Below are positions 2,662 through 47,213 of a stretch of 64,000 nucleotides of DNA, piece after piece. The position numbers were made by a program, and so were the translations under genes. This DNA comes from Glycera tridactyla (lineage: Eukaryota), in NCBI GenBank assembly GCA_965644265.1, contig OZ286466.1:38068001-38132000 (forward strand), in the 5' to 3' direction. Within the stretch, counting starts at the first letter, position 1; each line of letters opens with the position of its first letter. Under the pieces are notes generated by a model that made no database searches, was not told where the DNA came from, and saw nothing but the letters and a program-made list of their open reading frames with translations.

Positions 2662-2750
2662 TCACAATAGCGCAAAGATGACACACACGATGAGGGAGAT
2701 GATGGAGAAGCTGACATGCCTGGCATCTCCTCGAGCACTCTGGGCAGCTT
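2662..2750 (-). CDS. Gene A terminal coding exon: GPI-signal-like tail
   Basis: Acceptor ttcatttgtag, phase 1; (E)AAQSARGDARHVSFSIISLIVCVIFALL-stop: small residues, spacer, then a hydrophobic run ending at the stop. Confidence 0.8.
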
Positions 2751-3047
2751 CTACAAATGAATAATAAACAAATTGTTATTCATTGAAATGATTGATGATG
2801 TTGCAACAATGCTGAATCTACATGCGAGAGATGCAATTATGACTGTCACTACAAAGAAGGTGATTATCGATGGAATTTCATATATCGAATGCAACTAAAC
2901 TATNNNNNNNNNNNNNNNNNNNNNNNNNNNNNNNNNNNNNNNNNNNNNNNNNNNNNNNNNNNNNNNNNNNNNNNNNNNNNNNNNNNNNNNNNNNNNNNNN
3001 NNNNNNNNNNNNNNNNNNNNNNNNNNNNNNNNNGGGGGTTGTATGTA

Positions 3048-3097
<50 letters not shown>

Positions 3098-3880
3098 TGC
3101 GTGTGTGTGTGCATGGCCTAATGAATTGAACAATAATTGGGAGGAAGGGTAAATATGAACGTGCAATATCGGGAACTATAAAACACAGCTATTCCCACAC
3201 CCACACAAATGAATATTTGCAAATGGGATGAAGGAAGTAAATTAGAATGATCGGCATATATACCATAAATATGGGTACATTGGAATCTTTTAAAATGAAG
3301 GAATATCATAGCAACTTCGATTCATCAAGTCAAACCATGTATATGACTGATCTTTTAACATGTCGGTATACTGTACATACATGTCAGTCATTGACTTTCC
3401 CATCTTGTTTTTTCTTTGTCTTTGCTACGGATAGTATCAAAGCTGGATATATACTAGGTGTTCAATGACTTTGGCATCCAAATGTAGAGTGAAAACTGAC
3501 AGTTTAGCAAATAACATGACCATCAATGGCAGATATATTCTGCTGTGGTAGAACACGATCAAAGGCTATCTCTTCTTTGTGTCAAGACGTGCGTTTTGCT
3601 TCAAATATGAACATAGCTTTCAGTAGTGAGTATCAGTGTCCGAGCAGTTAAATATCGACAGAATAGGTGATCACAGCTTCCAAGGTCCCCTTAGAAAAGG
3701 ATAGTTATTGTGTCACCTCCCACAAATTTCAATTTCACTTATGTAGCCTCTGGTGATATATGTTTGAGAGACATCAGGTTTTTTCTCATTATCTAATGCT
3801 CCCCTATAAGAATGAAATCAGAGCACTTCCGAGAATCGGTTAGCAAATGCATGGAGCACACTGTACAGAGTGCTTATAGC

Positions 3881-3957
<77 letters not shown>

Positions 3958-6900: not shown

Positions 6901-9900
6901 CTCTTTTGAGGAGACTGATAGGTCACAGAATATTTTGTCTAGTTTGCCCATACCCATAGTTTCAATGACAGCAGTCATATATGGGACTATGAAGGCTTTG
7001 TATCTCCGATAATCATAGAGTGGATGGAAGATCATTGTCTGAAGCATGAAAATTGTGCTTTCAGTTAGCGATATCATCAATCTACTGGAATCACTTCCTC
7101 AGGATCTCATTGGTATGAGTAGTAGCAGTGTTGCTGCCACTGAGCAAAGTCTTGCAAGAGGAGTATCACGATACTATAAAACAGAGACCAAATAACCACA
7201 ACTAAGTAACTACTTCAGAAAAAAGATGACAATATAAAAAAATAGCAAATCTCACCATGATGAATCCTAATCTTTAAAAAAAAAAACAATGAATGTATGA
7301 ATGGTGAACAAGTGAGTCAGCTGGGAAAAGTTCCACTCACCAACTTCTTTACTGTTCTTTAGAGCAACTACATGGCGAGTGCGACCCAATGAATTCGATG
7401 CAGTGAATATGTAGTCTGTGAAGTGCTGATCGAACACACGGTCGATGTGGAGCGACACCATGAACTCAGTTGGCGATTTCTGCAAAGAAATTGATAATTT
7501 AAACAGAGTTAAACGATAGGTCTAAGACAAAAGGACATAATATGCTATAGGACAACGTCAGCAAGTTCTGCAAGGCATTGAGACTGTACCCAAATCTAAT
7601 TCTGACGTTGCAATAGATAGGTATGCAAATGTGCTACTGCGTANNNNNNNNNNNNNNNNNNNNNNNNNNNNNNNNNNNNNNNNNNNNNNNNNNNNNNNNN
7701 NNNNNNNNNNNNNNNNNNNNNNNNNNNNNNNNNNNNNNNNNNNNNNNNNNNNNNNNNNNNNNNNNNNNNNNNNNNNNNNNNNNNNNNNNNNNNNNNNNNN
7801 NNNNNNNNNNNNNNNNNNNNNNNNNNNNNNNNNNNNNNNNNNNNNNNNNNNNNNNNNATTTCCGCATTTATCCATAGTATCACGTGTATTATAATGGCAA
7901 TGTCTTTCAAATGGTATATCCGTACCTGGTCATTCATCAAACAACTATCAACTATAGGAAAGATCAACTGAGGAAAGATGCTGTATTGAATCGGAGAAAG
8001 ATACACGCTGATCAACATCATCACCCCTACCTATATGTTTCCCTACCTGGCAAACTGAGAACACGTTTGGGTATGTTAATTTAAACAACAACAAGGCATA
8101 TTGATCTTTCAATTTTTCCTTTCTAGGTATCATATGCGCCTGATTACCCATTCACTGGACTTCAATGCATCAATCTCAGATCATTCCAATGGAATCTGTT
8201 GTTAGTTCATCAGATTGCTATTGGATTTCCTCAACTTGATTGAGCTTTCCAGAAGTTTGTCCATCATGCTACCTATTGTGATATATTGCGTGGTGGACAA
8301 ATGCTACTATGATCATCACAGGTGAGTAAATCTGGCATGAGATGAAATGTGTAGGCATCGTTGATTGCATTTATGCGGATGGTAAAATATATTTTGGCAG
8401 CAGTAGCATTTTCTAATATTTTATGAGATCAGTTAAGATCACGGAATCTCTCACTAACCCAGACAGTACTTTGAATTATACCACAGTTAAAATCATACTA
8501 ATGTATGTCTATCCCATTCACGGCGGCATATGCTATCTATTAATTCTCTCTCCCCAGTTTTCGTGTGTAGGTGTGTGTGTGTGTATTGGGTGTGTGTGGG
8601 GGGGGGGGGGGTATGTATATGTGTGGGTTGGTGTAGATGTGGGGATGTGGGTGTGGTAGTGGAAGTGTCGTGCGTGTCATCTGCTGGGGATACTTCTGGT
8701 GAGTGACAAGAGTGAAAAAAAAGCGTTAATGATATTTTTTGAATTGGAAATTCCAACTGTTCGATTGATCCTCATTTGTCCTGTATGCAGCCAACAGAAT
8801 ACACTACTATCGTGATTTTCTCTCTGATTGCCACAATATTCACCTTTGTCTAATGTGTCTATCGACTGCATCACATTAAAAAATATATGATCAGGCGTTC
8901 TATTAGAACCATCAAAAAGCAGTGCATGTTGGATGAATCTAGACAATTCCAAGTTCTTCCATAACCGGGGCAACGTGACAAGGCATTTGCTGGTTATTCA
9001 CCACGCCGTGCTTTCGATGACGACATACTTCTCCATGGAGGTGACCGAAGAGAAATTTAACTGCTACTTGTATTATACCCCTACAATATCATATGTACAT
9101 CTACATCCGTTCCCTAGTCCAAATACAAATCCAATACTACTGTAATACCACAATGTCCACATCATCCACTCTTTCCCGCACTGCCTCCTCAACTATTTTC
9201 CGATATCATCTCCCGCGCCTTACGCCACTAACCACAGTATCTAGCCACTCTAACATGAATTCATTGTAATATTTTTTTTTCTTCTTATCATTGTATAATT
9301 GTACTGTACAATATATTGACCATGTTACCTAATTAAGCGACCGTTCGAGCATGTACATGCTTCACGAATACAGTTTATTCAATTCAATTCTAAAAAGAAA
9401 TTGGACTCAAGTGATACAGTAGCCCTTATCTACTGCATCATTCCATAGTCAAATGATGAATGACACCATAATGCTTTTGGTCTTTGCATGAAGAATGGCA
9501 GAATATACAATAAGCGTCTCCTGATTATTGTAAGATATTTCGAAATGTTTTATAAGATTTCATGCCTTTCCCGAAGATATCACTGCTGCAAGGCATATCA
9601 ATGGGTGACTATATTAAGAGCTATATCTGAATAAAATGTTTCTTATTTAGTAAGGAATCATGCCATATACGGATACAATACCCAAAACCACCATCCTACA
9701 CCAGAGCTCACTGAAGGCATTAAAACATTGAGAGATCATGCACAATCACATGCTTTTAAATGTTCTCTACACATGCAACTCTCACACGCTCGCACACAAG
9801 TCACATCCCATTGATAATCTGTGTTCCTTGTGGCGCACACTCATTTTTAGAATATTGATCAAATATCGAAAGTATGCAGTCCAATTGATGACCCTCTCAT

Positions 9901-10211: not shown

Positions 10212-10285
<74 letters not shown>

Positions 10286-16200: not shown

Positions 16201-19189
16201 CATTCAATAGACACCAAAAGCATCTGATACGCTGATAGAGGACAGAGGGATGCAGACTTTCAAGAGCTTGTACAATGCACTGGTTCCAGACTACATTATT
16301 GCATATTATGAACTGGTTCATGCGCAAAACATTCGAATGGAAGCAGAAGAATGAATGAATCAATGAACAAATGAATTAATGAATAAATGGATGAGTAGAG
16401 GGGACTGTAATTGTATAGCTGGGGGATAGAATGGATAGTTGGATGAATGTAAGGTCGACGGATTGGATAGATGGATGGATAAATAATGAGTATGTAAATG
16501 ATTCGATGGATAAACAGCTGAAAAGACAAACAGATGGACAGACAGAAAGACAGATGATTGGGTGGATTGATCAATCGAGAGTGATGTTTGGGTACTAAAT
16601 TAACAGGAAAAACAATACAGAAATTTCACTGAAATGCAATCATATGTGAAAGAAAAAATCAATTCTTGAAAATGATGTCAGTATCCAAGACAAAATGAGT
16701 TGCACATGAAGAGGACAGTCGGAAAACAGATATTTCATGGTGAGCAGACACATTGAGAGATGAATGTATGATTCGATCAATTGAAGTTTGTTGATGATGA
16801 ATATGAAGGGAACTAATCAACACCAAAGAACGCTTTCACATTACAGTCGTCCGTCCAAATAAATCCATGAACTTAACAAAACACAAAATATCATAAATAG
16901 ATTGGAAATAAATGATCGAACTCATTGCTGAAGAAAAATGAAGTATGAATGCGTTGGGATGCAGTATTTTCGGGACTTTTTTTATGAGAATTCCCTGAGG
17001 CAGTAAGATTGGGTACAGGAGGGTATAAGAGGAAGTAATGGAATGAAACAGGTGGAAAAAACAAAAACGAGAGGAACTCATACAATGATGACTTATAGAT
17101 ATGAATGAATACTCAAATAATGAATGATTTCATCAACAAGGCTGAGCATATTAATAAAAGTATAAAAAAATGAATAGAAAAATCTCACTTACACCTTCGA
17201 CCAATTCTACTGTATAGTCGTCAGTCTAAATAAATGAAATAAATGAACAGGTGAACAAACAAATACACAAATTGACAAACAAACATGTATAAACGAATGA
17301 ATGACCGAATCAAGAAATACAGTGAGTGTTATGTAATACTTATACTCACTTCGTTCATGTTGGCAGTGAAGTGTCCCTGTGATTCACCCTCTGAAACTGA
17401 CACATTTCCTTCATTCTTCTGTTCCCATACAACCTTGAAGTCCTGTACCGGAGGATCAGAGTTGACTGTGCAGTTGACCATTACGTCTGTCTGGTGAAGT
17501 TCGACTGCATACACCTTTTCACAGAAGAACTTGGGAGTGTCTGAAATGGAAAATAAGAAGGAGAAATGTACAGGATGTAGATCTCTGGGGTGAAATTTAA
17601 GATGTAGTCACTTCAATTCTCAACTCTGCGTGGCTTCTACTCGATTGCGGTTCACTTTCCATGCTAGACCTGCATCATGACACCATTGATTCTGCACATC
17701 TCGCAAAGAATGCACCACAATGTTCAGGTGGATAGGTTAAATTACCATACGCCATCACTCACTCCACCTAGGGGTGATTGGCTATGAAAGAGAATAGGAA
17801 TTAGTTCCAAAAGTCTCCACCAGTGTGTTTCAATGTATTGACCTCAAAGTGGCATCTCAGTGAGCTGACTCCCACTTCCTGTTTCAATCACTGCCATTTA
17901 AATATCTGGGAGTGTGAGATATGATTCGAACTGTCTTTCTGCAATCAATATGATATATCCAGTTACTCAAGACATTCCTATCATCAAAATTGACACATGG
18001 ATTACGAAAAATCCATTGTGCACCTCATATGCTTAAGCTGCAATGAGTACATAATCTGCTGATGGATGTGCCTCAAAACAAAACATCCAGATTTGTGCAT
18101 ACAAAAAGATCCACTCTGTTAATTCACAAAGATTGGGGTAAGTTCCCTGACATTCTAATCTTACGACAATGGTTTTTCTCGTGAAGAAATATCAAAAAGT
18201 CCCCACAAAAAATACAAAAAGAAAAAAATCATATTATTTCTCATTTTTTTATGTCTAATATTCTATGTTTCAGCAGCGATCATGACTCATATCTAGGATA
18301 ATCTTGTCTGGGTTGAAGAGATATTATAGGCCCTACTCAATCAATCAATCAATTAATCATATCTTGAGATATGCCACATAAAGTCATCCCAATCAATATT
18401 CCATTGCTATGGTTCTTCAAAACAGCACTAGATGGCAGTGATGATACTTACAACCCGAGAGCTTGACATGGATGGCGCGGTTTTCTTTCTTCCATTTGGA
18501 TCCAGGAACCTTGGCTTCACATCGCAGCTCCTTGTTGCTGAACTCGTAGTCGATGGTCAGAGACTCGTTCTTCATCTCAACATTGTACTTGACCTCTTCC
18601 CTGCCGACGACATCTCCGTCCTTGACAGGTGTGACCTGAGACAACGAAAATTGGCATGTCAAATATATGTTTGTTTGTAATAAGATTTGTTTTCATATGG
18701 CAGAATGATTTATACGAAATGATTTTAAGAGCTACATGGTGAACATAAAGCATCAATATTCTTAACTACACAAGATATGGAAATGAGCAATGACAAATAT
18801 ATGGATAAAGTTTATTAGCTCATACACTGCCAAAACTTTGAGGACATAGAAATTTAAGGGGATGATGAATACACTAGGATTCACAACAAAATGTTACCAC
18901 TGTCCTCAGTAGACTGATTGATCGATTGATATTTCTTTATTTTGATTCGTCATATGTACATGTACATACAATTACCCTTAATAAAGGGCTTTTCCGGGTT
19001 GACGAATAAGCATACTCATAACAATGAATATTCCGTTCAATCATATTTACTTAACTCGTTAGTGGTTAGTACTATCTCCAAAATTACAAACCCTATCGAT
19101 GTCAATAATATATCAAAATGAGTTGATACTGGCTCTCATTTTACCTTCAAAGAACCATATGATGATGTTAGTGTATTGTTTCGGAAATG

Positions 19190-19233
<44 letters not shown>

Positions 19234-30100: not shown

Positions 30101-31803
30101 NNNNNNNNNNNNNNNNNNNNNNNNNNNNNNNNNNNNNNNNNNNNNNNNNNNNNNNNNNNNNNNNNNNNNNNNNNNNNNNNNNNNNNNNNNNNNNNNNNNN
30201 NNNNNNNNNNNNNNNCAAACATCCATAATTGAACAAATCTGAGTTTCACATGACACAGTTTTGGATATAGATACATTCTACATATCTCTACAATTTCACA
30301 CTACTACAGTCAAACATGTCTCAAATCATGAAGGACATCATTACAAATGTACACCTTGCCAGAACTTATAACCTCATTTCACTTCAATATGGAAATTGCA
30401 GAAGGGATCTCAGACACTCCTGCATTGCCACAATTATATCATCTACCATATTGATTCATTGGTGAAATGGCCCCTGTCCTAATTTCAAACAAGCTGTCCA
30501 CAGAGGGATTTTCACTCTGCACTCTTAGAGTTGTGATAATGGAATGAAGTGAAGCTTCCTGGAGTGCTGTTTACTACAGCTTTAAACTTTCTCATCAAAA
30601 CAGGGTAGACATATACATGTATGTCAAAAGTCACAAATTTCTGTCTGGAAGCATATCCAAGATAGTGACCAGGGCTGCCACACGTTCTTGATAATCTATT
30701 AGGTGCAAATAACTTCATCATGTGATCATGATCCAAGCGTTGTTTACATGACATCTCAACAGTGGGACATCGCAGTTGCCACCTGTTGACGAAGGAGTCT
30801 CTTCAAAAGCTACGTAAAACTCACGTTTTGACATGAGCAACGTGAAATTCCTATAACATATTCAAAAATTATCTCAGTTTTTTTTGTCTCACCTGGCACT
30901 GGCATGTGAAACATTAGTCAATCCAATATATCGGACCTATGTCAAGAAACTAACAAACATTCTACAGATACTTGAGTCACTTCAGTATCTCAATATGGGG
31001 ATGCAAATTTCATTGCAAAGGTTTTGTCCCAATGATAGCTGAACCATGATTTTCATGAAGATTGATTTATTGATTGTTTGACATTCAACAGCATGTATCA
31101 ATCCAGAGGATTATGCTGTATGTTCCTGGTCAATGAAAGATGGATGTTCTGTCCCCTGCAGACATCACTGACACAAACCCTGAACACAAGATGATGAATC
31201 GGTGGTAACATATAAGACAGATTCAACTCTACATTAATCTACTTCGTTACATCTACACTATTACAAAACCTACATATTTCCCGGAAGGGAATCACTCATT
31301 ATGAAACTGTCCTAATGACTGCTATCACTATCTATACCTATTAATAAAGCCCACTAGTCATACATGTTTCACTCTAAACAAATCCATTCCTGTGACGTGA
31401 ATCATCTTTCGATTCATATTACTTATCCTGGGGTGAATTTTATTCATCCACGTTGGCACAGAGACTGAAAGGTTTATAGTTCTTTTGAATGTAGAGAAGG
31501 TGGTTGATCTCATTTGGAAAATTGTCCGACAAAAACGGAGTAGTGGCTTCAAAATAATGGATTGGTGATGACAAGTATTTATTCAGGACCCAATGCGTCA
31601 TGGAGGAATATACAAACAATGCATGACGGAGAACATTCAGACAAACCAAGTCAATTTGTGGATAATTAAAGGACATACGCCTATGCATATTATGTCCTGC
31701 ACACACACAAACTTGCATGCGCAAACGCGCGCACCCGCACACACACACACACACACACACACACCAAAAACGAGCAAACAAACAGCTGCCTCTCAGATCT
31801 CAC

Positions 31804-31900
31804 CTTTATGTACGAGTTTGTATATTCAATAATTCGTTTCTGTTCTCAGTTCAACAACACAATCTCTTGCAAGCTCCTCCATAAATATGCCCCTCCCCTG
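31804..31900 (-). promoter_or_regulatory. Possible promoter and short non-coding first exon for gene A
   Basis: Minus strand GGGGAGGGG, then TATTTAT (31881..31887), then a strong donor AAG|gtgaga at 31804; lies between gene B stop and gene A first Ig exon. Confidence 0.25.
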
Positions 31901-34435
31901 ATATGAGCTCACATCTCCACCATTCACTCACAATCCCTAATTATTCTAGGCTTTATCACCTAATATGGGAAGTCTGTATTTAATGGAATAACAATCCATG
32001 AAAACAGACAACTTGATGCAGAGCATCACAATGTAGGGCATCTTTAGCATTGGAATGATAATAATAATTATATCATTCTGTGTAGTGCCTATGTTGCTAA
32101 TTGTGATATGGCAAAAATAAAGTTTTTTGAATTTGAATTTGAATATAATAATAATAATAATAATAATAATCATTACTATCATCATTATAATTATCACCAT
32201 CATCATCATTACAGTATTATCATACCAACAGGCATCAACCAAGTGATATTTCATCTGCTGCGAAAGCAAAATGAAATCTCATGGAGGGTGGCAAGTGACA
32301 TCTGTTAGTGGACTACTGTATTGATAAGTTGCTTCCCATACACCAGATGGCTCCACTTCTTGCCTGCACGTGCTTCTAGATGGCACTTATGGACGCCTGC
32401 TTCACTCAGATGCATATGGAAATCAGGGAGGCCAACTTGAATAAACCTAGCGATTTTTCCATTTGACATTACAAAATGAAACCTCGTTGAGTAATGACAT
32501 TATTCAGTGACATAGTCCATGTAAACCTGAACGATGCAGTTGTCCAAAAAATTGGTAAAGAATAGTGAAGTCTACATTCAAATTTGCTCATGGGTGCAAT
32601 CACTATCTTATTCATTGCTTAGCTTCCTGGTCTCAACTATAATGTGTCCAAAAGACAGATCTGACCCTAGACCGGTGGTCAGAGCAACAGCTAAACTTCG
32701 GCCATAGTTCAGACTACCAGCATCATCTGACTTTGCTGGTCATGTGACTGAAACAAGAGCTTCAATTGGCTCCTAGTTGCTCCAACAGAATGAGAACCAA
32801 TATTCAACTGTGGCTTGAATTCATTTGAAAAAATAACAAGATACACACTCAATTCATTCCTCAACAAACACATGATAATGCAAACAGACAAGACAATAAA
32901 TTATCATCAACAATAAGATGCGTATATCGAGAGCTCATAATATTTTTTCATTTGATAATGACTATCAACAACCAAGCTACAAAATTGCAGACAACCACAT
33001 TTATTTACAGGATTGTTCAACCCTCTCATCCCCGGATTTATGATTGACTCGAATCATCATCATTTATTACCAATACATCTCATACTCCATCCAACTCACA
33101 AATAGAATACAGGGAGGAAAGAGCGCCCTCAACCAAAAATATTATTGGTAACTTACCTGAAAAACTTCACTGTACACCTATTATATTCTTCCACATATTG
33201 TTATTCTTTCAATATGATGGCCCTATTGTGAAGTGTTCTCAGTGACTTCACCCTATGTCATCATTCTTATTATAAATCAACATATGTAATTAAGAATTGT
33301 TGACACATGGAAGTATCTGAACTGAATTATTCAAAAATAGATGGAATGTAACAAGGAAAATTCCAAATATATCAGCAGCCCCAAAATCACTACTAACAAT
33401 GAGATAAACATAGCGAATACAAATTCTATCCTACAAAAATGTAATTGCTGATTTATAACTATAATACCATAATGATCAATTGCAGAATATCTAACCACTC
33501 TCCTCTGGTCAGGTGGTCTTCTCCAGCAAAATACCTCAAATGAAGAGGAAGTAGATGATTCAGAGATGTGGGCCCAAAATATGGACCAATAAAATGGGTG
33601 ATTTTGGAAATGTAGTCACATTTTTGCTCGATGTTTTATTAGTCTTAGGATAAAGCACTCAAAAGGTTTCAAGTTAGGCGGCAGCATGCATCAAGGAGAA
33701 AATTTTGCTGGTGGCTTTTGCCAGATTGTGAAATAAATAGTATGCGGGACCCTTTAACTTTCATTAGACCTATCAAATATCAAAGGTTGTGGTATGAATA
33801 TTTACAATTTCTCCATTCACACATAAGTTTGTTCATTATTTTCATTCAGTTTGAATCATTGCAACTACTCAGCTCGGAAGATGTGACCACCCAGCTGTTT
33901 CTATGGAATACACTGCCATCTGATGCTTCACTGAGGAACTAATGGCACACATCACTTCCATCAGGTGGCTGCAAATAAAAACTGTCCCTCTGTTCTCCTT
34001 GTGCAACAAACTGAAAAATGAAAGACAGAAAGACATACACTGACTGAAAGGCAGAAAGACTGTCAGATATAATTGATGACAGATCAACTGACCATTACTC
34101 ATTTCTCAAGTTGATAAAAAGATAACTGCAAATCAAGATGGATTATAGGTCACGCACCCAGCTCTTTAATCAATTCCACATCGATGTGATCCCTCAAATG
34201 TGATGTCAATACCGACCAAATACAATCACATTTGTGATGGATGCTCTCAGTTCATTTTTCACACACCACCACACTAAGAATTAGTGCGATATATTACAAT
34301 ACATCAACATTCAGGTAACTCCGAAGATGAAATAATGTTAGTTTCTCCTGTTACTGACGGATCGTTTCTCCGAGCATGTTGTATACTCATTCCTGATTTT
34401 GATGATTCTGACATGAGACACGCAAACACACTGCT

Positions 34436-34441
34436 TTTATT
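34436..34441 (-). terminator. Candidate poly(A) signal for gene B (another at 33635..33640)
   Basis: AATAAA on the minus strand about 340 nt after the stop. Confidence 0.3.
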
Positions 34442-34776
34442 CACTTTCTATTGTGCTATGATGTATGTTGACTAGATAATGTGAGTGTCTGATGGCATTT
34501 TGTCTTATGTGACGGCTTCATATAAGTGTCAAACTGATCATATACCTCATTTGGTGCTGATGACTGAACCAAGTGAATCAATAAGTTGTGGAGATACAAA
34601 TAAATAAAATGCAGAAGAAAATATTTTTGGCAAATCAAATGTCATACACACATAAATAACCAAATCTGAGCGGATTAATAAAATCTTCTCCTCCCACAAA
34701 TCGGTGAGATAGCGTGAAAAAAAATAGCTCAGTCGAATCATGGATCTAGTCCGCCCTCCAGCGATAATTAGAGGCA

Positions 34777-34886
34777 TCACAATGATAGGGATGAGATGGC
34801 AAGCAAGATGGCGGTGGTTGCTATGGTGACCAGTAGACTTGAGCCTGTAGGTGAGCTTACACCACCCCCAATGACAGCAGCCGTGT
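34777..34886 (-). CDS. Gene B terminal coding exon: GPI-signal-like tail
   Basis: Acceptor tttgttctgttacag, phase 1; (D)TAAVIGGGVSSPTGSSLLVTIATTAILLAISSLSL-stop. Confidence 0.88.
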
Positions 34887-37800
34887 CTGTAACAGAACAA
34901 ATACAGCATCGAGATTAGGATAGATGTTCACTTATACGTCAAATCCAACATTCACCAGGACCCAATTCCCTGTCGCTGCATTTATTCCATCAGTTGTTGA
35001 ATAACTGTGACCCCAAAATAGGAAGTCAACATGTGAATTTTATTCATAGAATGAAACCCTCAAGATTGACCACTCCCCATCTGACCTCAATGAAACTTGA
35101 CATCAAGCTATCATGGTTTAACATGGAAAATATTAACTTATTATGTCATTTGATAGGATTACTTGGTGTATGTTATACTTAAGTGCAATCAGCAAGCCAT
35201 GGAATTTGATTCAAAGTTTCTATGCAAACCTCATCAAATACAATGTTATCTGGAGTGAAGGGACTATTACTTCTAGTTGCCACGTCAACCAATAGCTATC
35301 AATCTTTATAGCGGACCTTCAATGGAATTATGGTATGTGACAAGCAATAACCTCTAATTCCACGCCCTTGATGATCTGAAAATTTGTCCTCACAGATAAG
35401 CGGCCACTATGTAGTGATGACTTACAGTGAAAATACCATGGTCTAAAATTGAGATATTAGAAGGCAGGTGATGTGAAACCCTGCAACAAGAAACCCCTGA
35501 CTAGAGACCACCTCCAACACGAGACTGCTTTTCTTTTTGACAAAGTCAAATTCACCACACATGAGTCCGCCTCTTCTGAGAGACCTGTTTGGTGACATTT
35601 AGGGTGGTTTCCCATCGCAGATTTCCCTGTAGTATTTCATGCAAGGATTTCCCCTATAATTTTTCCATTTCTATTCACATCAATGAATTTCGGAAATCTT
35701 ATTACAAGTGATATTGACTCTGAAAGGTTGGATTTGGTCTAGAGGATCACTCTAAATTTGTTTTGTATCGAAATGATTTCAGAAGTAGAAACTGACCTTC
35801 AACCAGTAGTATTGTCGTTTGTGATTCCCCAAGTGCATTACTTGCAACAAATGTGTAGTTTCGGAACATCTGTTTTGCGACAATTTTCAAGATCAGCTGC
35901 ATCAGTGTACGACCCTCATCCTGGAAAAGACCACATGGATGTAGAAAAAGTCATCANNNNNNNNNNNNNNNNNNNNNNNNNNNNNNNNNNNNNNNNNNNN
36001 NNNNNNNNNNNNNNNNNNNNNNNNNNNNNNNNNNNNNNNNNNNNNNNNNNNNNNNNNNNNNNNNNNNNNNNNNNNNNNNNNNNNNNNNNNNNNNNNNNNN
36101 NNNNNNNNNNNNNNNNNNNNNNNNNNNNNNNNNNNNNNNNNNNNNNNNNNNNNNNNNNNNNNNNNNNNNNNNNNNNNNNNNNNNNNNNNNNNNNNNNNNN
36201 NNNNNNNNNNNNNNNNNNNNNNNNNNNNNNNNNNNNNNNNNNNNNNNNNNNNNNNNNNNNNNNNNNNNNNNNNNNNNNNNNNNNNNNNNNNNNNNNNATG
36301 GATGGATAGAGGAATAAATGTATGGAGGANNNNNNNNNNNNNNNNNNNNNNNNNNNNNNNNNNNNNNNNNNNNNNNNNNNNNNNNNNNNNNNNNNNNNNN
36401 NNNNNNNNNNNNNNNNNNNNNNNNNNNNNNNNNNNNNNNNNNNNNNNNNNNNNNNNNNNNNNNNNNNNNNNNNNNNNNNNNNNNNNNNNTGGATGGGTGC
36501 ATGGACGGATGGATCGATAGGTGCATAGATGAATGGATTGATTGATTGATTGATGAATGGATAGATAGGTGGATCTTGGGTGGATGGATGGTTGGATTGA
36601 TTGATGAATAGAAAATTAACGGATGGATTGATGGATGGATGGATAGGTGAACAAATGAATGGATGGATGGATTGACCAATGAATGAATAAATAAATGTTG
36701 TCAAAATGATACTTACATCAGTAACAAGCTTTCCAAAATATCGTCCATCTCCGGGACCTTTCGGTAGCACATATTTTGGTACCTCCTCGGCTTTGGCCTC
36801 ACCCATAGGGTACCAGTAAAAATGGTAGTCGGAGGGGGTAGGCTGACTGGACACTTCACATGAGATCACAAAGTCACGCTCGTACAAGTAGGCCCTCTGC
36901 TCCGTTGCACACTCAAATCGCGGGCTCACTGCACAAAATCAAACCAGACGGCTCATTAGATCAGTTGGTCAGTTTAAATTTAATGGCATGTATCAATCTA
37001 TGGGATTTTGTATGCTGTGAATCTACAGGGCTCTACTTTGACATTTTTCTCCAGCAGTTCTCAGTGCTTTACATTAACCTTTTTCTTCAGCTGTCCTCGG
37101 GCAGTTGAAGTAGGATTTCAAGCTGCCCTCACTGTCATTTTCACCTGCCCTCCTGCATATAATCACTGCCTAAATAAGGGTAAGGTACTTGCCCATCAGC
37201 AGGCAGATTGATAAAATCACTCGCCCTAACAGGAAATCTGCCTGCCTGAGCCATTAGGGCAACCATTAACATAGAGCCCTGGTTCTTCTGGCAGGTGAAG
37301 TGAGATTTTCACCTGTCATCCATAACATTTTCACTTGCCCTCCAGCATACATCCATGGAGTAGATAATGATCATGTGCCTGCAGATGGGACAGATAAAAT
37401 GACCTGCCCTAACAATGATTGACCTTATGATACCAATAGGACAGAGCATAGCATAGAGCCCTGCATTTTTCAGATCTATGAAGGGCCGATGAATTAACCC
37501 CTGCAGGCACCATTATCACGCAACCAAAGAGAGAGGTTGACAAGGGGAAGTATGTAGCAGTTCATACACACCTCTATCTACACCAGTTATCAGAAACTTA
37601 TATCAGATTGAAAGTCCAAAGGTTTAACTGCACAATGATACATGCAATAAGAAACCCAAACAAAAGACTGTGCTTCAGTGGTCTCTGAAAGCATCTTACC
37701 TGTTTGATATAATTGATATACATCTGATGCAAGATTACATCATTCTAATGACTGTTCTTGAGAAAAATCAGAGCAGTCTATCATAGGTATCATGGGATAT

Positions 37801-40800
37801 CGAAAGAAGGAACTGAATAAGCAATTCATTTCAGAATAAGATTTAGTGGCAACGTAACCATGTCAAATATAATGTTTTCATCCGTTAAATATTTCAAGTT
37901 CTTATCATAATTATGTATACTTACTATCTTCCATAGCAACGAGAACACGCTTCTCCAATATTTCCTCGATATTCGGAGTTCTGGCTCTGCACATCAGAGG
38001 GTGCCTGGCGAGATTGTAGGTCATACTCATGTGCGGAATATCATAAGTTGTTGTCATGGTAACCAGTTGCTGACCGTTGGCTTCACCAGGACTGATGTCC
38101 TCTTCAACCGTATCTACGGTGATGTTGTGTGGGTAGCTCAACGTCAAGTTGTGTCCATTGGAGAAGAGTTCAATGGTAGATGCTGGATAACTGTCCGATG
38201 CCACACATTTCAACGAGATGTTTTCATTCTCTTTGAATGTTATTTCCACGTCAGTTGCGATATCAATCTCTGCCCCATCTTTAATGATTACCATTTCCAA
38301 TGATTTTGGTGGTACTGAAAAGGGAACCGAAGCATACATGTATTAGCTTTTTGATATTAATTTTCCATGAACTGAATATACAAAGTATGTTTAACTACCA
38401 CTGCTGCAGCAACTACCCGCATGAAGTGAGCCTATCTAATTACAATTATCCGATAACAGTTCCCATGGTGATTTGTCTCTTGGAGTGCTGAAGTTCTAGC
38501 TACCACAAACAGCCATATCCAGAATATATTTCTATAAAGATTACTTAACGTGCCTCACCTAAACCTTACCAAAACACGTACAGTCGAACCTGTCTATAAA
38601 GACCGCCTTCGGTCGCATAAAAAAGCGGTCTTTATGGGCAGGTGGTCTTTATAGAGAGGTCATTTACTGTTGAAAATACTACCATGGTCGCAGCTCAGGT
38701 GGTCTTTATAGAGAGGTGGTCTTTAGAGCAGGTTCGACTGTATTGATGCTGTTCATTCTGTCTTTATTGGAATGAGGGGGTGATACATGAATATAAAGGA
38801 TGGATTTGGATGATGTGTCGAACCCGCTTTCTTACAACATTTCATATTCACTCTGCTTTCATACTAAATGGACATCTCGTGGTCATCTCTCCCCCATTTC
38901 TGTGTGAATTTGTATTTTCTATTAGTTCATCTATCTATTTATTTATTCATTTCATTTATCTATTCTGTTGGTTCTTCATTCATTTTTCACTCATCCATAA
39001 GTTAATCTATCTATTCATTCATGCATTAGTTCATTCAGGGCTCTACATGAACTCACTTATCCCTTGGACAGGTGAAGTGGACTGGCTCCGAATATGCACC
39101 TCACGAGGAACAACATGGGTCTTCAACTGGCATGTGTTCTTGCTTTTATCCCATAACTGATTTTTGTATCAACAATTTTTGCCCCACTCCACCCCATCAG
39201 TGGAGCAGGCCTCAGCACAGAGCCCTATTCATATATCTATCCCTTTATGCATACATTTGAAGTATAGCCATAAATCATCAAAATAGGTATTGATGCACAG
39301 GTATGGCCTGAAATGTTTGTGGGAACCTGAGATCTGGAGCCATCATGAATTTGTGTGTTGTCAGCAAGAACGATTCATAAATACCATTACAGCACTGACA
39401 TCACTCTTAATGGAACCCTTTCCATATTAAGCCAGCTTCATTTATGCCGACATAATTTCCAGTTTGACACAAATACTGACATATTGATTCACTCATAGAT
39501 TGGAAATAATGAACACAAAATGATCATGTCCATCTTCAAGGTGACATCAACCATACATCTAACATATGTATACCACATATATAAACTATCACAAACTAGA
39601 GTTAAGTATTACACTGTTGAAAATATGACACAACTTTTCATGAAAGTCGATCCAACAAACAAATTTGATTATTTGCATGGATTGGGAGTATTTAGACCAT
39701 TATAAATCGTATGCATGCTAACCCAGTGCATGCCGACTGAGGTATCAAAGGCCGGCCGTGTGTAAGTAAGTAAGTAAGTAAGTAAGTATTCATTTATTAG
39801 GGTTGCATACACATTACAAGGAATGCATGTATAGGAGTCTTTTCCTGTATGCACTTAAAAGAACCACTGCAGTCTTTTGCAAAGAGTAGGGATGGCCCCC
39901 GGCAGTGGTGCCTCTTTTCTTCAGCATTTTCAGTTTTTCAGTCTGATATAACCAAAGGTGGTTGAAAGGACATTAAACAAACCACATACTAGTATATTCA
40001 CTGTAACAATGGAATGCCTTCAAAATTCAAGGTCGCAAATAGTGTTGCAGTGATCAGGAAGGGTCAGCATGACACCGGACAGGCAACTTCTGTATTCCAC
40101 AATAGTATAAGTATTTTTCTGTCTTACAGTAGCATTCTGTGAATGCATTCCCCCTCACAAGTATCCACAGGTCATTATTTTGCACCAAAATATCAGCTCA
40201 AAAACAAGGAGGTCGACTTGATGAATTTGATGAATCCTGACACAAAAAGGGCAGGAAGGAACAGACACAAACAAGGTCGTTACGGTCGGGTTTGGTCTTC
40301 CATGGGCTATATCAAACACACAGGCCAGTGTGACAAATTTGACCCGATCAATTGAGGACTGAAGCCAAATTCATCATAATACTCACCATGTACAACGAGC
40401 TCGATAGATTTTCTCACGGTCTTCTCGCCCTTGACAACGCACTTGAATGTTCCTGAATCTTCAGGACGGACTGCTGTAAAAATAATGAATCACACTTGAA
40501 ATGGATGTCACAGGTTGGCATTTCTCGAAAAGATTTGTATCTGTGTCAAATCCATGAAATTCAAACCGGGCAGCTCAAATGGTAGATTCGATCTTCAATT
40601 TTCAACTGTGTCAATTTCATGCGGTGCTGATTTTATATAGGATTAGCGGCCTTATCAATGTAATTTCACACACCATGCGCTACCATCAATATTGGCACAT
40701 TTGACATAAATGCAATAGGACTGTAGTGATTCTTGCATGGAATAAGTCAGATGATCACTGAAAGTTCTTCATTTGTTAGTGACATTATTCAGATCATGGT

Positions 40801-43800
40801 ACATGAAGAATCATGAGGACATCATGGGAAATCTATGAACCTGACTTTTCATCAAATCTCCTTGTCAACCTTTGAATAGATACCATCTGCCTTTCAGAAG
40901 TCAAGTGCTGGCTGTATGTTTTGCTGGCGGTGGGTGCCTTACTCACAGGCCATGGATTCAAACCCCTCATGAAACGCGAAAATTGGGCTTAGGTATTTGA
41001 CACCTTTCATGGAGCTGTTGCCAGGGCATCATGTCACTGACATGCAATCAATTGAAAAAAGTGTGTGAGCATGCCTTTGTCAGACCATACTTCAACATCT
41101 CTCTGACATAAAACCTGATCTAAGAATTCACCGAGAAATACCTCAAATTCTTGACTAAAATTTCTGGTGTCACCTTTTTCTGAATCCATTGCATTTGCTA
41201 GTTGACTCCTAAGAGTGAATCATAAATTTTTAAAACTAAAAGTAGCTAATTTGACAGGCAAATATTGTGTGACTGATCAAGAAAATTCCAACTATATTAT
41301 GTTTTTGGCTTGATAGCCAACGTCAGATTCATTAGAATATTTCCATATAATTGATGTGTAGTCCTATCATTAGGTTAGTAGTTGACATAGATTTATATGC
41401 TTCTCTGAATCACAGTCAAACCTGTTTTGACTGCTTAAAGCAGGTGGCTTCCTAGGGCAGTTGAATTATAGTGAAAAAAGCCTTTGATGGGATATTGAAA
41501 ATGGCTGCTTAGGGCAGGTGTCTGCTTAGTACAGTGACTGCTTAGGACAGGTTAGACTGTACATACGTTCATCTCCCATATATATTCAGTACATATATTC
41601 ATTTGTTACCCAGAAAATTTCAAAAGATACAGGGATGGAGATTCACTGCGGTCAAGTCACTCATAGTCAAAATATTTAGGACAAAAGTCTAACAGTTTCC
41701 TGATTGGAGTGCTCTTGAAATATATCACGGGTGTTGAAAAAAAATTTGTTTCTTCGAAGGGTAGCCATACATTACACCAAACGTTCTCTCACAGGCCATG
41801 TATTGCCCAGGCAATATATTTGAAAATTGACAGAATTCTCCAGTCATACATTATCCAGCTTCGGTTGAAGGGAGGTCAAACAATACTCAATCAATCAATC
41901 AATACTCTCGTTAGGAAGCAAACTATCACATGATATAACAGCAGTGATAGATTAATCAAAGATGTGTGTCGCCTGAAGCAATGTTCCACACAATTAATCA
42001 ATATATCTCCTATCTCGCAGTGGAAAAATACTATCAGAGTCATCTTTATTTATAGCTTCAACTTTGTTTTTATGTCGACAGAACTATGGCTTCTGTGATA
42101 CATTAATCATGCAGATGATGGCTGCAGAAACAGAAAAATGCGTTTCAATCAAATGAAATCCCAAGAAGACGAATCCAATCAGAGAAAAAATATCAACATC
42201 CCCAAACCATGACGCCAGATGTCCTCACAAAGTGAAGAGCACATCTTCGTGATTACGACATTATTCCTCATCCTGTTGGATAACATTTCGCCACTTTATT
42301 TCCAATCAATTCTGACCTATCTGAGGATGTTGAATATTCCTCATCAGATGTTATACAATGCAGGTGAGGAAGAATAGAATATATGTGTGAATAGATGAGC
42401 ACTTGATTGCAGTGAGTTGGCTTCATGAAATCGCTCTGATAGTGTAGCATTTAGCACACGATCATAACATGTATGGGAAGTCTCGATAATGAGTGACAGG
42501 AACAGAATACGGCTTTGATCTGTCGATATCTTTTCAATTCTGAAATGATCTGCATGACAGAATATTGGTTTCTTCAACGCAAGCCAGAGAATCCAGAGAA
42601 TATTGACAAAAAGACATTGATGAGCTTCTTGAAAGATATTTCATCACACAAGGCGGTTTCATTTTACCAGCATTTCAGAGTGAAAAACGGAATTTTGAGA
42701 ACATTAACTGAAGTCAGTCAAGTTCAAATGAGACGGAAATGTTTTCATCCTACTGGCAATGACAATCAAGATCTGATTCAGGTGAAACTCACTGACCAGC
42801 TTGGCTGATATCTTTGGCAAGCAGAGATGAGATCAAGGTGAACCAAGTGAGCCAAATATATCAGTTTCTCACAGTGATAATAGCGAAGGCAGAGGCCACA
42901 TCCCAGCAGTTGCATGCTCAAAGCCTCACCGATAATGTCAGCAGTTTTGCAGTATGAATGCAATACAATCATAGCAAATCCTCTCTAATTGAATAAGGCT
43001 GCATTTGGGATCCAACCTGATGATCAACAGAAGTTCGGTTTGGTTGAGAATTAGTTGGATTTGACAGACTTCATCACTTTTCCAGCTAATGGTGGAAATA
43101 TGTAAAAGGTCTGATGTGTAGAGCAATCTATTGCCTCAAATTCTTCTGATTAAATTTAAATTAACCTAGAGCCACTGAGCTGAAGTTGTGGCCAGATTAT
43201 CTCGCAGTTTGTTTAATCTATTGCCTCAAATTTAGTTGTTTTCCTTGTTTGGATTTTTGGGATTGACAATTCTTGTTGATATGCATTGATCACATACCAT
43301 TGGTGGAAATTGACACACATTACAAAATGGTATATACTGCAAAGAGTGACATCTCGTGATGACCTTGGGAACTATCGGTACAAAATCATCCATTATACAA
43401 ATTTTCACCAAATGTTCATCAACACTAAATATTTGTCCTCCAAATTCACAACCAATAAATTAAAACTTGATCAAAAGTCATTTTTCAGACATGAACACAT
43501 GCCTTCTCACTTCTAAAATGATCAGACAGACACACCCTCCCTATAATCTAAGGAGAACTCATTCTGTCATGCGATCAAAATCGCACTGACAGAACATGTG
43601 ACAAAACAACAGCAAAGTTGCAGTAGCCTCAGGCTGACAAGAGCTGTTTTTCAAAGCTTCTCTGAAGCACCTAGCTAATTACGAGTGACAAGAACTTCTG
43701 GCTCAAGAAATGTCAGTTACTAATTTGTGTCCTTTAGGTATTGACCAAACATTGATTGTGATTAATTAATCAATGAAAATAAATCCGTTTAATTGATTGG

Positions 43801-46800
43801 CAGAATAGATTTCTAAGATCATCAGGGTTCTATGTTGATCAAAATGTTTATGAGCCGTCCTACCCACAAATCGATATTTTTGTAGTCATTGCCAAATCTG
43901 GATGGCCAGTCAATATACCATCAAATAGAACCTCTCAAAATTTCAGGGGTCATTGGCTACTAACCTTTAAAACATGGTAGCCAGAGGGTAAATTTGGTGG
44001 CCATTAGCTACCCACAGGTAGCAACATAGAGCCCTGTCTATCAGTTATATTAATCAGAATTGCTGAAGGATGCTCGAAGTTCTATTCCAACTTCACAAAT
44101 TAAATCAATGGTAGCGATAGGAACAAGATGTGTAATGCACATGACAAGAAGCGCCATCTGGTGTTACTATAATAAATCACACTGTGGGAAAAAATCTAAT
44201 TAGGAAATCATCCACGGTGAGAATTTTATTGAATGAATGGATGTGATCATTGCTATTGGATTGTGATGCTTTTTTATGTTCGTCACAAATTTCTGGTTAT
44301 TTCTCATAAATTTGGGGCCATGCTTTTTTATCAAAACAGCCAGACATATCACTGAGTGGATCTACTCCGAGAGAGTTTGTTGGGCACAAATGTATACATA
44401 GGTAACGTGTGAAAAGTCATTTACTCGTCAACACACTTACATGACTTTCTCTCACCGAGCTCCTGAGTTGTTTTGCATATCTTATATTTCTGTCCTTCAT
44501 CAAGGTGAATTCATTACCTACAAATATTTCAACAGTTTTATCCAACCATACATCTAGGGCAGGGCTAGTACTGGGCAGACAATGACATTGTACCAAAGTT
44601 ATCCTTGAATTTCCAGCCTGCACATGAATTGGTCAGTGCCATGATCTTGATAATCTAACCTGTTAATGGCAATGTCTCGTTATACAGCTATGTGTCTGAG
44701 TACATCTAGGGGCTAAAAAATCACAGAATTGTTCAAGCAAATGGGTCAAACAATCAATTTCATGTTCATCTGGTTTATAGTACATTGCAGGGAAGAAAAT
44801 TCTGAGAGCCACTTGTCCTTTAAACAAGTGGATTGGAGGAGGCACTTGTCCGAATCGGAGAAGTACTTATCCTGGCTGTGTGCATGATACTGTATCAATT
44901 TGGTTTGCCCTTTTGCTCTCAAGTAAAATACGATTGGTGCCCTATGTACCCCATTGAGATGCCCCTTTAATTTGCATGGCTGGGATGATTCGGGACTCAA
45001 TTGGAAAACTCATGAAATTCACAGACACTCAAGGTGTCATTCCTGAAAAACTCAACACAGCTTCTGCAGCCCAATCCTTCAATTGACTGTACCGGTTCAA
45101 TTCTTTCATCCGTCATATTTCCAGCGAATAGCTCAGAATTCTGGTCTGTGTTGGTGAGATTTTTAACAGCAAACAGCACAGGGCATGAAGAGATGGCCTC
45201 CCACATGCCTGAGGCAGGTATATTTCGAGGGTTGGCAGATTGATTTTGGATTTACCAGCCCGATGGACAAGTGGAGAATGATAATAAATGCGAGCAGGGT
45301 TAATTTCAAAGGGGCAGGTAGATTTGAAATATACCTACTCACTGAGCAGGTGGATATTTTTGAAGTTGGATGTGGATAAGTTAGTTCCCAAGATAACCAC
45401 CGTGTGAGTGGTGGCGCTTCTAACACAATTTCCAGATTTCCAGATTATTTGGTGATAGACTCGAGAACTATCAGTAGTTCCAATGGTTGATGCTGGTGGT
45501 CTGATGATAGGGGACCAGACAAGTGATCGCACACATGCAGCGCCATCGCAGTGCGGCAGTCACTTTCATAACTATTGGATTTTCAACATTCAAGATGGCG
45601 GCACGGGCCACCTGCCGATGAATAAAATTGCTTTTCGCCTTTACTTTCATGGTGAATTCATCGATATACAACAGAATGGCGCAAATCATCAACTCGTCCA
45701 ATCAGACTACCATCTGCAGCCGCATGTATGTCTGAACATGTTTTGTCATCATCCAGGACTATTAGACATAGGATTTTTCGCACCCTGCATTGCTCAATAT
45801 GGACTGATACTAAATTGAATTATATGCATGTATCTCCCCATGTATTTTCCCCACTTTCAGTACTGATATTCATTTGATACTCAGAAAAAAATCACAAGAT
45901 ACAGGGATGGAGATTCACTGCGGTCAAGTCACTCATAGCTAAACGATTTTGGATGGGACAATTTCTGCCCTATTGGCTCTCGAAATAAATATTGTTTGAC
46001 CTCCCTTCATCCAAGGCAGAATCATGTGAGACTGAATAATTCTGTTAATTCTCAAATATATTATCTGGGCAATACTTGGCCGATGAAAAAAAGAAATTCT
46101 AGTGTAATCTTTGGCTACCCTTTGACAAAGTTGCTGATTTGGTAACTGAAGATGTATTTCGAAGGTGTTTGAATAGTTGAGTGTAATTCAATAGAAATGT
46201 GAGCAGGTTATGATTTGGAATGAACATGATATGAAATTGAAATGTACAGATTACATTCTCAGAAATCATCTGATTTCTTTGTGGATCTCCAGCAAGGCAT
46301 GAATCGCTTAGTCCATGAAGAAGCAAGCTGTTTTCTATGCTGAGCTATGTGGACCACTCCCAATGAAAGCAGCCACACACCCCAGCCAGGAGCACACTCT
46401 ACTCCTCACACTGACACTCAGAGACCAAGTTGACTATCTGGTCATACTCGTGTTCAAGCTGTTTTTTGTGAAATTTTTCACGCAATGGGAGATGATTAGA
46501 ATGATACACCACTGAAGGTTGAGAGTTGTTTCACTGGATCTAAATTGGTATTATGATGGATGAAGCTGATTGGCATGAGCATGACTACATTCACACACCT
46601 GCACTTCTCACATGAGCATCAACATCTGCTGGGAATGGCCTTCCAACATTCTAAGGGTTGCAACCAGGATTTCCCCAATCTGGCGGCATTTACCTCCAAA
46701 AAATTAAGAAAAAGGGGCATTTCTTCTCAAAACTGATCAACATGGTCTACTGAATATTGAAAGGTGCCACAAAGCAGCAGATGCTTGCACTAGTAGTGGG

Positions 46801-47213
46801 CAAACAATCCACAAGGTGGCTGTCAGCATACGCATGTGATATGGTGCAGCCAATGACCATGAGTTATGGCACTCCCCACAAAAGCAAGATTCTGCCTGAG
46901 TCCATATAATTGCCCACATTAGGTGAGTGGCAACAAGCAAAATGCTTCAACTTACCTGTGACATTTAGATAGTAGAATATATTGCTTGCGTCTTGGGGAT
47001 CCTCCTTATAGCTGACTTGATATCGGCTACTGGCGACGACGTGCTCCAGGACCAAGTTAGATGTGTACATGATGTCTGATGGATCTGCCTCCTTGTACCA
47101 ATGCATGACTTCGTTGTTGCCTAGACCGATGATGTTGCACTTCAGCTGTATGTCCATTCCTTCCCTGACGACTTCTGGCTTCAGTGAGACGTCCAAAGTC
47201 GCACAAAATATTT
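34777..47213 (-). CDS. Gene B: paralogous 3-Ig-domain, probably GPI-anchored cell-surface protein; 6 coding exons found, leader exon missing
   Basis: join(46956..47213, 40387..40473, 37925..38314, 36717..36928, 35797..35920, 34777..34886). GT-AG introns, phases 1,1,1,0,1, open for about 393 codons. Motifs: IQLKC..HWYK..EDSGTFKC; LKCVASDSYP..LMCRA; PRFEC..ISCEV..NYTFVASNALG; hydrophobic tail. Confidence 0.92.
35473..35629. mobile_element. Degenerate TA-flanked MITE
   Basis: gtgaaaccctgca..gcagatttccctg|TA; gagaccacc repeats like 48986-49266. Confidence 0.45.
35797..35920 (-). CDS. Gene B exon: second half of Ig domain 3 (not in the ORF track in this frame)
   Basis: Acceptor gtggtcttttccag, donor AAG|gtcagt; 124 nt, phase 0-1; DEGRTLMQLILKIVAKQMFRNYTFVASNALGESQTTILLVE. 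Confidence 0.9.
36298..36690. repeat. (GGAT/TGAT)n simple-repeat tract; similar tract at 16340-16570; (AAT)n at 19191-19230 and 32140-32220; (GGAA)n at 10660-10700; homopolymer runs at 12238-12256, 25491-25511 and 57102-57126
   Basis: Direct reading. Confidence 0.95.
36717..36928 (-). CDS. Gene B exon: first half of Ig domain 3
   Basis: Acceptor tgattttgtgcag, donor GAT|gtaagt; 212 nt, phase 1-0; (M)SPRFECATEQRAYLYERDFVISCEVSSQP..FYWY. Confidence 0.92.
37026..37463. mobile_element. Two adjacent MITE-like units with CAGGGCTCTA..TAGAGCCCTG ends (hAT-like termini)
   Basis: cagggctcta at 37026; tagagccctg ending at 37281 and 37463; no clear TSD. Confidence 0.55.
37925..38314 (-). CDS. Gene B exon: entire CD80-like C2 Ig domain 2
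   Basis: Acceptor ggttcccttttcag, donor GATA|gtaagt; 390 nt, phase 1-1; (V)PPKSLEMV..ISLKCVASDSYPASTI..HPLMCRARTP. Confidence 0.92.
38581..38740. mobile_element. Tc1/mariner-type (pogo/Tigger-like) MITE, intact
   Basis: TA|CAGTCGAACCTG..CAGGTTCGACTG|TA inverted ends with TA duplication; internal gaggtggtctttata repeats. Confidence 0.85.
39036..39227. mobile_element. CAGGGCTCTA-family MITE
   Basis: cagggctctac..cagagcccta inverted ends. Confidence 0.5.
39760..39860 (-). mobile_element. LINE-like 3' end: AATAAA followed by (TTAC)n tail
   Basis: Minus strand ..ccctAATAAAtgaatac(ttac)6; plus-strand (taag)n at 39762-39788. Confidence 0.5.
40387..40473 (-). CDS. Gene B exon: C-terminal part of Ig domain 1 (not in the ORF track)
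   Basis: Acceptor tatttttacag, donor ATG|gtgagt; 87 nt, phase 1-1; (A)VRPEDSGTFKCVVKGEKTVRKSIELVVH. Confidence 0.92.
41413..41559. mobile_element. MITE of the same TA-flanked superfamily
   Basis: CAGTCAAACCTGT..ACAGGTTAGACTG|TA; internal ctgcttag repeats. Confidence 0.7.
41624..41666 (+). repeat. 43-bp sequence identical to 45896..45938, inside roughly 150-bp diverged homologous blocks
   Basis: aagatacagggatggagattcactgcggtcaagtcactcatag at both sites. Confidence 0.95.
43823..44036. mobile_element. CAGGGCTCTA-family MITE
   Basis: cagggttctatgttg..caacatagagccctg 15-bp inverted ends with one mismatch. Confidence 0.65.
46230..46390 (-). mobile_element. tRNA-derived SINE-like repeat copy in gene B intron
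   Basis: catagctcag A-box-like motif; co-linear similarity to 23625-23775. Confidence 0.5.
46956..47213 (-). CDS. Gene B exon: N-terminal part of V-type Ig domain 1
   Basis: Acceptor ttctctctgttgcag, donor CAG|gtaagt; 258 nt, phase 1-1; IFCATLDVSLKPEVVREGMDIQLKC..MHWYKE..SSRYQVSY..YYLNVT. Confidence 0.92.

Follow-up and report, generated by a model that had tools for sequence, protein, structure and literature searches.

The 64,000-nt stretch of Glycera tridactyla DNA analyzed here (C18:38,068,001-38,132,000, within a 2.04-Gb assembly; hereafter the window) carries two genes, A (34777-47213) and B (2662-23536), both on the minus strand, each of which encodes three immunoglobulin (Ig) domains followed by a short hydrophobic C-terminus. 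Judged by their sequences, A and B are old tandem duplicates of one gene type and belong to a small, undescribed family of at least seven loci. This family is defined by a signature in the third Ig domain together with a phase-0 intron within that domain, and the conserved, non-canonical third domain is its most unusual trait. We consider it reasonably probable that both genes encode glycosylphosphatidylinositol (GPI)-anchored adhesion or recognition proteins that bind through domain 1.

Two paralogous genes with a common three-Ig architecture

In a six-frame reading of the window, Ig-like open reading frames (ORFs) were present on the minus strand only. Gene A has six exons with 384 codons, not counting the leader, and begins in our model at its first acceptor (47213), while gene B has seven exons with 396 codons and ends with its stop at 2662. 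In both genes, all exon borders have AG/GT, and the frame is open over every join (Table 1). The encoded proteins follow the same plan, i.e. a V-like Ig domain, a C2-type Ig domain, an atypical third Ig domain and a short hydrophobic C-terminus. In both A and B, domain 1 is interrupted by a phase-1 intron between strands E and F and domain 3 by a phase-0 intron between strands D and E, and the inter-domain introns are all in phase 1. Domain 2 is encoded by a single exon in A and by two exons in B. Between A and B, 22% (domain 1), 23% (domain 2) and 25% (domain 3) of the residues are identical, far more than in shuffled controls (z = 7, 10 and 23, respectively). Thus, the central proposal of the sequence-only reading, namely a same-strand, strongly diverged paralogous pair with a V-like/C2/atypical-Ig/hydrophobic-tail layout and common intron positions in domains 1 and 3, is confirmed.

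The three domains differ in how clearly they can be typed. In domain 1, the two Cys residues are 72 residues apart in A and 84 in B, which fits a V-type domain, and based on this spacing and weak V-set matches, we regard domain 1 as V-like but not as a proven V domain. Exon A1a (acceptor ttgcag, donor gtaagt) has weak Pfam Ig_3/I-set matches, and B1b is the sole Ig-like phase-1/phase-1 exon between B1a and B2a. Domain 2 of gene A, encoded by exon A2, matches the Pfam family PF08205 C2-set_2 (CD80-like C2) with 24.6 bits against a gathering cut-off of 21, and an atlas feature search (0.93) returned ten best named matches that all belong to C2-set_2 or its clan. The two halves of domain 2 of gene B were scored separately; the first half matches C2-set_2 with 14 bits, i.e. 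below the 21-bit cut-off, and the second half gave nothing. The description of domain 2 as CD80-like C2 stands for A, while for B it is a candidate assignment.

In domain 3, A and B share the F-strand motif Y-x-F-x-A-S-N-x-L-G, in which Phe occupies the Cys position. In the first half of the domain, both have two Cys 16 residues apart (C-x16-C) at strand A and strand B positions. The conserved spacing and the alternation of core-facing residues suggest that these two Cys would form a disulfide between strands A and B.

The 3' part of gene A could be compared with RNA. Two runs of the same organism were used, in which 6% of the words of 34500-40495 are present, and RNA contigs were compared with 30216-35956 and, thus, with the 3' part of gene A. 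One contig of 366 nt (X1 record 7) matches 35920-35797 and 34886-34777 without mismatches and skips the 910 nt in between with GT..AG on the minus strand, precisely as predicted for the A3b-tail junction; the initial 132 nt of the contig lie beyond the compared stretch, on the A3a side. The skipped intron is mostly bare of RNA contigs, and an internal GT inside the tail exon is read through by this contig. Thus, gene A is transcribed, and the hydrophobic tail, with no transmembrane or cytoplasmic exon in its place, closes the coding sequence of this transcript. For gene A, this RNA contig bears out the hydrophobic tail as the last coding exon, and the transmembrane or cytoplasmic exons named in the sequence-only reading as evidence that would refute its proposal did not appear in this transcript; the tail of gene B is a prediction.

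A small, dispersed family

To place A and B among their relatives, profiles of both halves of domain 3 were searched over the whole genome. Because only the best candidates were scored, the resulting counts are lower bounds. At least seven loci on three chromosomes have the domain-3 signature, i.e. A, B and five more (Table 1). C-x16-C is kept at all five additional loci, and wherever the second half was seen, it has Phe (at C18 17.96 Mb, Met) instead of the F-strand Cys, with the phase-0 intron at the same place. The domain-3 halves of these paralogs map onto complementary halves of Pfam I-set. Other parts of the architecture were also found: the C18 25.65 Mb locus has a B1a-like V exon, two paralog loci have domain-2 exons upstream, and two have candidate short hydrophobic terminal exons. 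At C18:25,661,636-25,661,803 (plus strand), domain 3 of the 25.66-Mb paralog is followed by an ORF for an acidic stretch and ~30 hydrophobic residues with a stop behind them; this stretch is longer than a usual GPI signal and, therefore, some family members might be membrane-spanning. The domain-1 profile recovers three of the seven loci (A, B and the 25.65-Mb gene), making domain 1 the most divergent part of the family.

The sequence-only reading had also suggested that A and B might be part of a cluster of recognition genes. Neither tblastn nor a motif scan detected further A/B-like exons within 100 kb to the left or right of the window, leaving two genes within 264 kb, and protein searches of the genome with A2 and B1a returned no near paralogs. 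The remaining members are either 12-22 Mb distant on this chromosome or located on different ones. Thus, A and B belong to a small dispersed family and not to a cluster, and the suggested cluster is not upheld.

Outside of this genome, the only exhaustive search was a HMMER scan with A2 over 1.84 billion representatives, and it gave no ortholog and no IgLON, DIP, lachesin-like, nectin or CADM match. Five proteins matched at E < 0.001 (P0001-P0005) and were rejected as relatives: each is a long repeat protein with numerous weak stretches, and P0001 belongs to the PKD/bacterial-Ig repeat type. A2 also had no significant match in the PDB. Word searches, which miss distant or much longer proteins, gave no matches with B1a and with the profile of the second half of domain 3, and a single protein, P0006, with the profile of the first half. 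P0006, encoded on a 747-nt contig (L050) of an ENA metagenome, is orthologous to exon B3a and stems from a related species; 53 of 63 residues are identical and both Cys are kept. Between B3a and P0006, the proportion of differences is 0.68 at synonymous sites (pS), which are saturated, and 0.083 at nonsynonymous sites (pN), giving a ratio of nonsynonymous to synonymous substitution rates (dN/dS) of about 0.05. Thus, in the comparison with this one related species, exon B3a is under strong purifying selection. The exhaustive A2 scan and the word searches with B1a and both domain-3 profiles turned up no clear 1:1 ortholog of a described gene; together with the domain-3 signature common to at least seven loci, this agrees with the earlier idea of a lineage-specific family.

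The contig with the B3a ortholog also aligns with part of the intron between B3a and B3b. A block of this intron is strongly conserved (Table 1), while the remainder of the intron does not align with L050 and the synonymous sites of the neighboring exon are saturated. Within the block lies a short open segment that looks like a conserved, regulated micro-exon in domain 3.

Probable membrane anchor, proposed function and alternative readings

In the model that we favor, each gene would give rise to a secreted-pathway, GPI-anchored surface protein of ~400 residues with three Ig domains. Domain 1 would be V-like, domain 2 of the C2 type (CD80-like in A) and domain 3 I-set-like without the usual disulfide between strands B and F. 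The few small residues after domain 3, the hydrophobic end of 17-19 residues and the stop would direct cleavage by the GPI transamidase. Taking nectins/SynCAMs and IgLON/DIP proteins as a guide, one would expect domain 1, which is distal to the membrane, to engage a partner on another cell in a homophilic or heterophilic manner, with domains 2 and 3 serving as a stalk and the lipid anchor leaving signaling to co-receptors. In nectins/SynCAMs, binding is carried out by the first domain (PMC10084454). Both adhesion as the function and the tissue are inferred.

At the C-terminus of gene A, 19 hydrophobic residues, backed by RNA, are followed by the stop with no basic stop-transfer residues after them; at that of gene B, 17 hydrophobic residues in the predicted last exon precede the stop. 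The residues before the hydrophobic end are GGGVSSPTGSS in A and AAQSARGDARH in B. Both proteins most likely have a GPI anchor, and they would also have a signal peptide.

Several observations weigh against this model. The omega sites of A and B were judged by eye. A leader (signal-peptide) exon was not found, whether within 117 kb upstream of A or in the stretch separating A from B, where one N gap lies. The contig that joins A3b to the tail exon is the only one with this joint, and it halts exactly at the last base of the stop codon. In gene B, the tail exon is predicted, there is an alternative candidate at 5645-5512, and two assembly gaps lie in the last introns. The V-like typing of domain 1 comes from spacing and weak matches; in the PDB, its profile matches Ig domains of many types, and the atlas gives no clear verdict. 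Finally, AlphaFold run on A2 without an alignment gave a predicted local distance difference test (pLDDT) score of 41.

A first alternative is that A and B are divergent members of the IgLON/DIP/Dpr/lachesin ("Wirin") family, in which case the V-like domain 1 and the C2-set_2 domain 2 would be products of divergence. IgLONs (NEGR1, neurotrimin, OBCAM, LSAMP), DIPs and lachesin likewise have three Ig domains with a GPI-type hydrophobic end right after them, a layout that A and B would share if the anchor predicted here is correct. The profile of the second half of domain 3 has its best solved-structure matches in the third Ig of DIP-eta, NEGR1, neurotrimin and OBCAM (E 0.0016-0.02; 0.0016-0.035 when DIP-theta is included), all five of which are GPI-anchored three-Ig neuronal proteins, and this half shares the motif hF-x-Y-x-(C)-x-A-x-N-x-x-G with IgLON/DIP proteins. 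Moreover, domain 2 of DIP-theta is the second-best PDB match of A2, albeit a non-significant one. Wirins have been reported from all bilaterians, with several protostome subfamilies (PMC10084454). However, the E-values of the domain-3 matches are marginal and the motif is widespread in neural I-set domains. The preference is confined to the second half of domain 3 and is seen neither with A2, for which the exhaustive scan lacked any such match, nor with the domain-1 profile, and sequence searches gave no whole-gene link. By contrast to IgLON/DIP proteins, A and B have V-type Cys spacing in domain 1, A has a CD80-like C2-set_2 domain in second position, and domain 3 has not kept the canonical B-F disulfide, having Phe (Met in one paralog) and C-x16-C instead. 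We consider membership in this family rather unlikely. The contrast with IgLON/DIP proteins drawn in the sequence-only reading was overstated: the second half of domain 3 best matches the third Ig of these very proteins.

A second alternative concerns the anchor only and holds that the hydrophobic ends are not GPI signals, so that there would be a tail-less transmembrane helix, secretion after other processing, or main isoforms with other 3' exons. In B, the spacing between omega site and hydrophobic stretch varies with the candidate residue chosen, and the gaps in its last introns as well as the longer, helix-like hydrophobic ORF after domain 3 at C18 25.66 Mb would be compatible with this alternative. 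However, the coding sequence of A ends directly after the hydrophobic residues, Gly/Ser-rich small residues lie upstream of them, stop-transfer residues are lacking, and the internal GT of the tail exon is read through. We hold this alternative to be quite unlikely.

Third, A and B could be non-chordate relatives of nectins/SynCAMs (V-C2-I) in which a GPI signal has replaced the transmembrane and cytoplasmic part. The order V, C2-set_2, I-like agrees with that of nectins and SynCAMs (CADMs), and the profile of the first half of domain 3 matches domain 3 of nectin-1 (E 2.6e-4). However, this profile matches the unrelated receptors MDGA1 and VEGFR2 about equally well, and specific similarity to nectins/CADMs was not found with A2 or domain 1. 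While nectins/CADMs possess a transmembrane helix plus an afadin/PDZ or band-4.1 motif on the cytoplasmic side, the coding sequence of A ends in a hydrophobic stretch, that of B is predicted to do likewise, and the A transcript has no exon for a transmembrane segment or a PDZ/4.1 motif. In addition, nectin/Necl orthologs have been reported from tunicates and vertebrates only (PMC10084454). In our view, this alternative is very unlikely.

The analogy with Hydractinia Alr in the sequence-only reading, under which A and B would be a polymorphic self/non-self or immune-type recognition locus, is unsupported and extremely improbable: like Alr, A and B are invertebrate genes with divergent Ig ectodomains that include atypical domains, the paralogs are very divergent and domain 1 is the least conserved, but Alr genes, which are transmembrane and form a large polymorphic cluster, contrast with the present genes in that there are only two within 264 kb, the one exon comparable across species is under purifying selection, the RNA-covered coding part, from other individuals, shows no differences, and cytoplasmic signaling motifs are lacking.

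GPI-anchored three-Ig proteins, i.e. IgLONs and DIPs, are central to neuronal partner choice, and nectin-type ectodomains are regarded as having arisen in chordates. The family described here would unite the two designs in a spiralian, and the Cys pattern of its membrane-proximal domain is conserved and non-canonical. It would extend the history of Ig adhesion molecules by a branch and offer a natural test of how well the Ig fold tolerates loss of the core disulfide. Its practical weight is modest, with neither a cluster nor a sign of hypervariability. Going further, we speculate that this is a spiralian family, so far absent from public protein collections, in which a V-C2-I ectodomain of the nectin kind is joined to a GPI anchor and the third Ig domain is rewired, with an intra-sheet disulfide between strands A and B taking the place of the universal B-F disulfide. 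On this view, the very divergent first domains of its members, along with one or more conserved and probably regulated micro-exons, may provide a small cell-cell matching code, e.g. between neurons. We regard this extended scenario as tentative and, taken as a whole, rather doubtful.

Gene features, assembly gaps and neighboring repeats

Table 1. Features of genes A and B, N gaps in the window and paralog loci elsewhere in the genome. Positions are those of the window unless a chromosome is given.
Feature	Position	Strand	Description
Exon A1a	46956-47213	minus	First half of V-like domain 1, strands A-E with B-strand Cys and Trp; phase 1 in/phase 1 out
Exon A1b	40387-40473	minus	Domain 1 strands F-G, motif DSGTFKC; Pfam V-set positions 76-99, E 0.04
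Exon A2	37949-38314	minus	Entire domain 2, CD80-like C2-set; Pfam PF08205
Exon A3a	36717-36928	minus	First half of domain 3 with C-x16-C
Exon A3b	35797-35920	minus	Second half of domain 3, NYTFVASNALG, Phe at usual F-strand Cys; piece of RNA contig spans exactly these bases
Last coding exon of gene A	34777-34886	minus	Gly/Ser-rich linker and 19-residue hydrophobic end; stop 34779-34777; GPI-signal-like
Probable 3' untranslated region of gene A	32535-34776	minus	Patchy, unspliced, low-depth RNA contigs of both runs over 32535-34750
Exon B1a	23228-23536	minus	First half of V-like domain 1; Pfam V-set positions 3-47, E 0.02
Exon B1b	21812-21895	minus	Domain 1 strands F-G, LNDAGELGC; acceptor tttccag, donor gtaagt
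Exon B2a	20743-20939	minus	First half of domain 2; Pfam I-set E 0.004, C2-set_2 E 0.05
Exon B2b	18452-18635	minus	Second half of domain 2
Exon B3a	17350-17540	minus	First half of domain 3 with C-x16-C; ortholog in related species
Conserved intronic block	17162-17290	minus	In B3a-B3b intron; 128 nt, 92% identical to contig L050 of related species
Candidate micro-exon	17225-17193	minus	33 nt, phase 0/0, open, TDDYTVELVEG; pyrimidine tract and AG acceptor, GTAAGT donor
Exon B3b	7341-7479	minus	Second half of domain 3, DYIFTASNSLG
Predicted last exon of gene B	2662-2750	minus	Short linker, 17-residue hydrophobic end and stop; GPI-signal-like; best phase-1 terminal-exon candidate downstream of B3b
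N gap	2904-3033		In a gene B intron (one of the last two)
N gap	7644-7857		In a gene B intron (one of the last two)
N gap	29938-30215		Between genes A and B
N gaps	35957-36297 and 36330-36489		In the domain-3 intron of gene A
Paralog locus	C42 12.20 Mb		Both domain-3 halves, right order, one strand
Paralog locus	C18 25.66 Mb		Both domain-3 halves, right order, one strand
Paralog locus	C18 17.96 Mb		Both domain-3 halves, right order, one strand; Met for F-strand Cys
Paralog locus	C18 16.17 Mb		Only first half of domain 3 seen
Paralog locus	C1 7.84 Mb		Both domain-3 halves, right order, one strand

The window is animal DNA with a GC content of 39%, an observed/expected CpG ratio of 0.43 and five N runs. 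None of the exons touches an N gap, the closest border being the A3b acceptor at a distance of 37 nt; an exon may, nevertheless, be concealed within a gap. In the domain-3 intron of gene A, a degenerate (TGGA)n array of ~46 units (36490-36672) adjoins both N runs and is the probable cause of these assembly gaps. Downstream of gene A, neither run has RNA contigs over 31368-32519, and because AATAAA is absent at the end of the probable 3' untranslated region, the 3' end of the gene is not fixed.

Two candidate elements of the gene models were set aside. Hydrophobic-looking ORF stretches just upstream of A1a and B1a, considered as leader exons, are the pyrimidine tracts of the acceptors. An ORF at 26583-26497 (minus strand) with the Ig F-strand motif GDDTTGEYYCQ was considered as the second half of domain 1 of gene B; it lies between the genes, upstream of B1a, would need phase-0 borders and has no partner exon, and it is probably due to chance or possibly a relic.

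Repeats are present in and around both genes. The intron between A1b and A2 contains a ~170-bp element (38568-38747) with very many genomic copies at 96-99% identity, which looks young and resembles a short interspersed nuclear element or a miniature inverted-repeat transposable element; the whole 4-kb query containing it gave 13,019 first-look genome candidates. This element is probably the source of part of the words common to the RNA runs and the region. Between the genes, 30984-31367 is an abundantly transcribed repeat: it is 86-87% identical to many genomic copies, and in both RNA contig sets its word depth is very high (~1,500-3,200), with many loose ends. Two motifs of the left flank (window positions -2660 and -1532) were considered as signs of a third gene and rejected, as they have no neighboring Ig exons and the region has an ORF that looks like that of a non-long-terminal-repeat (non-LTR) retrotransposon. 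This ORF, a 697-residue open frame on the minus strand (-10917 to -8827 in window coordinates) with reverse-transcriptase motifs recognized by eye, marks a candidate non-LTR retrotransposon just downstream of gene B.

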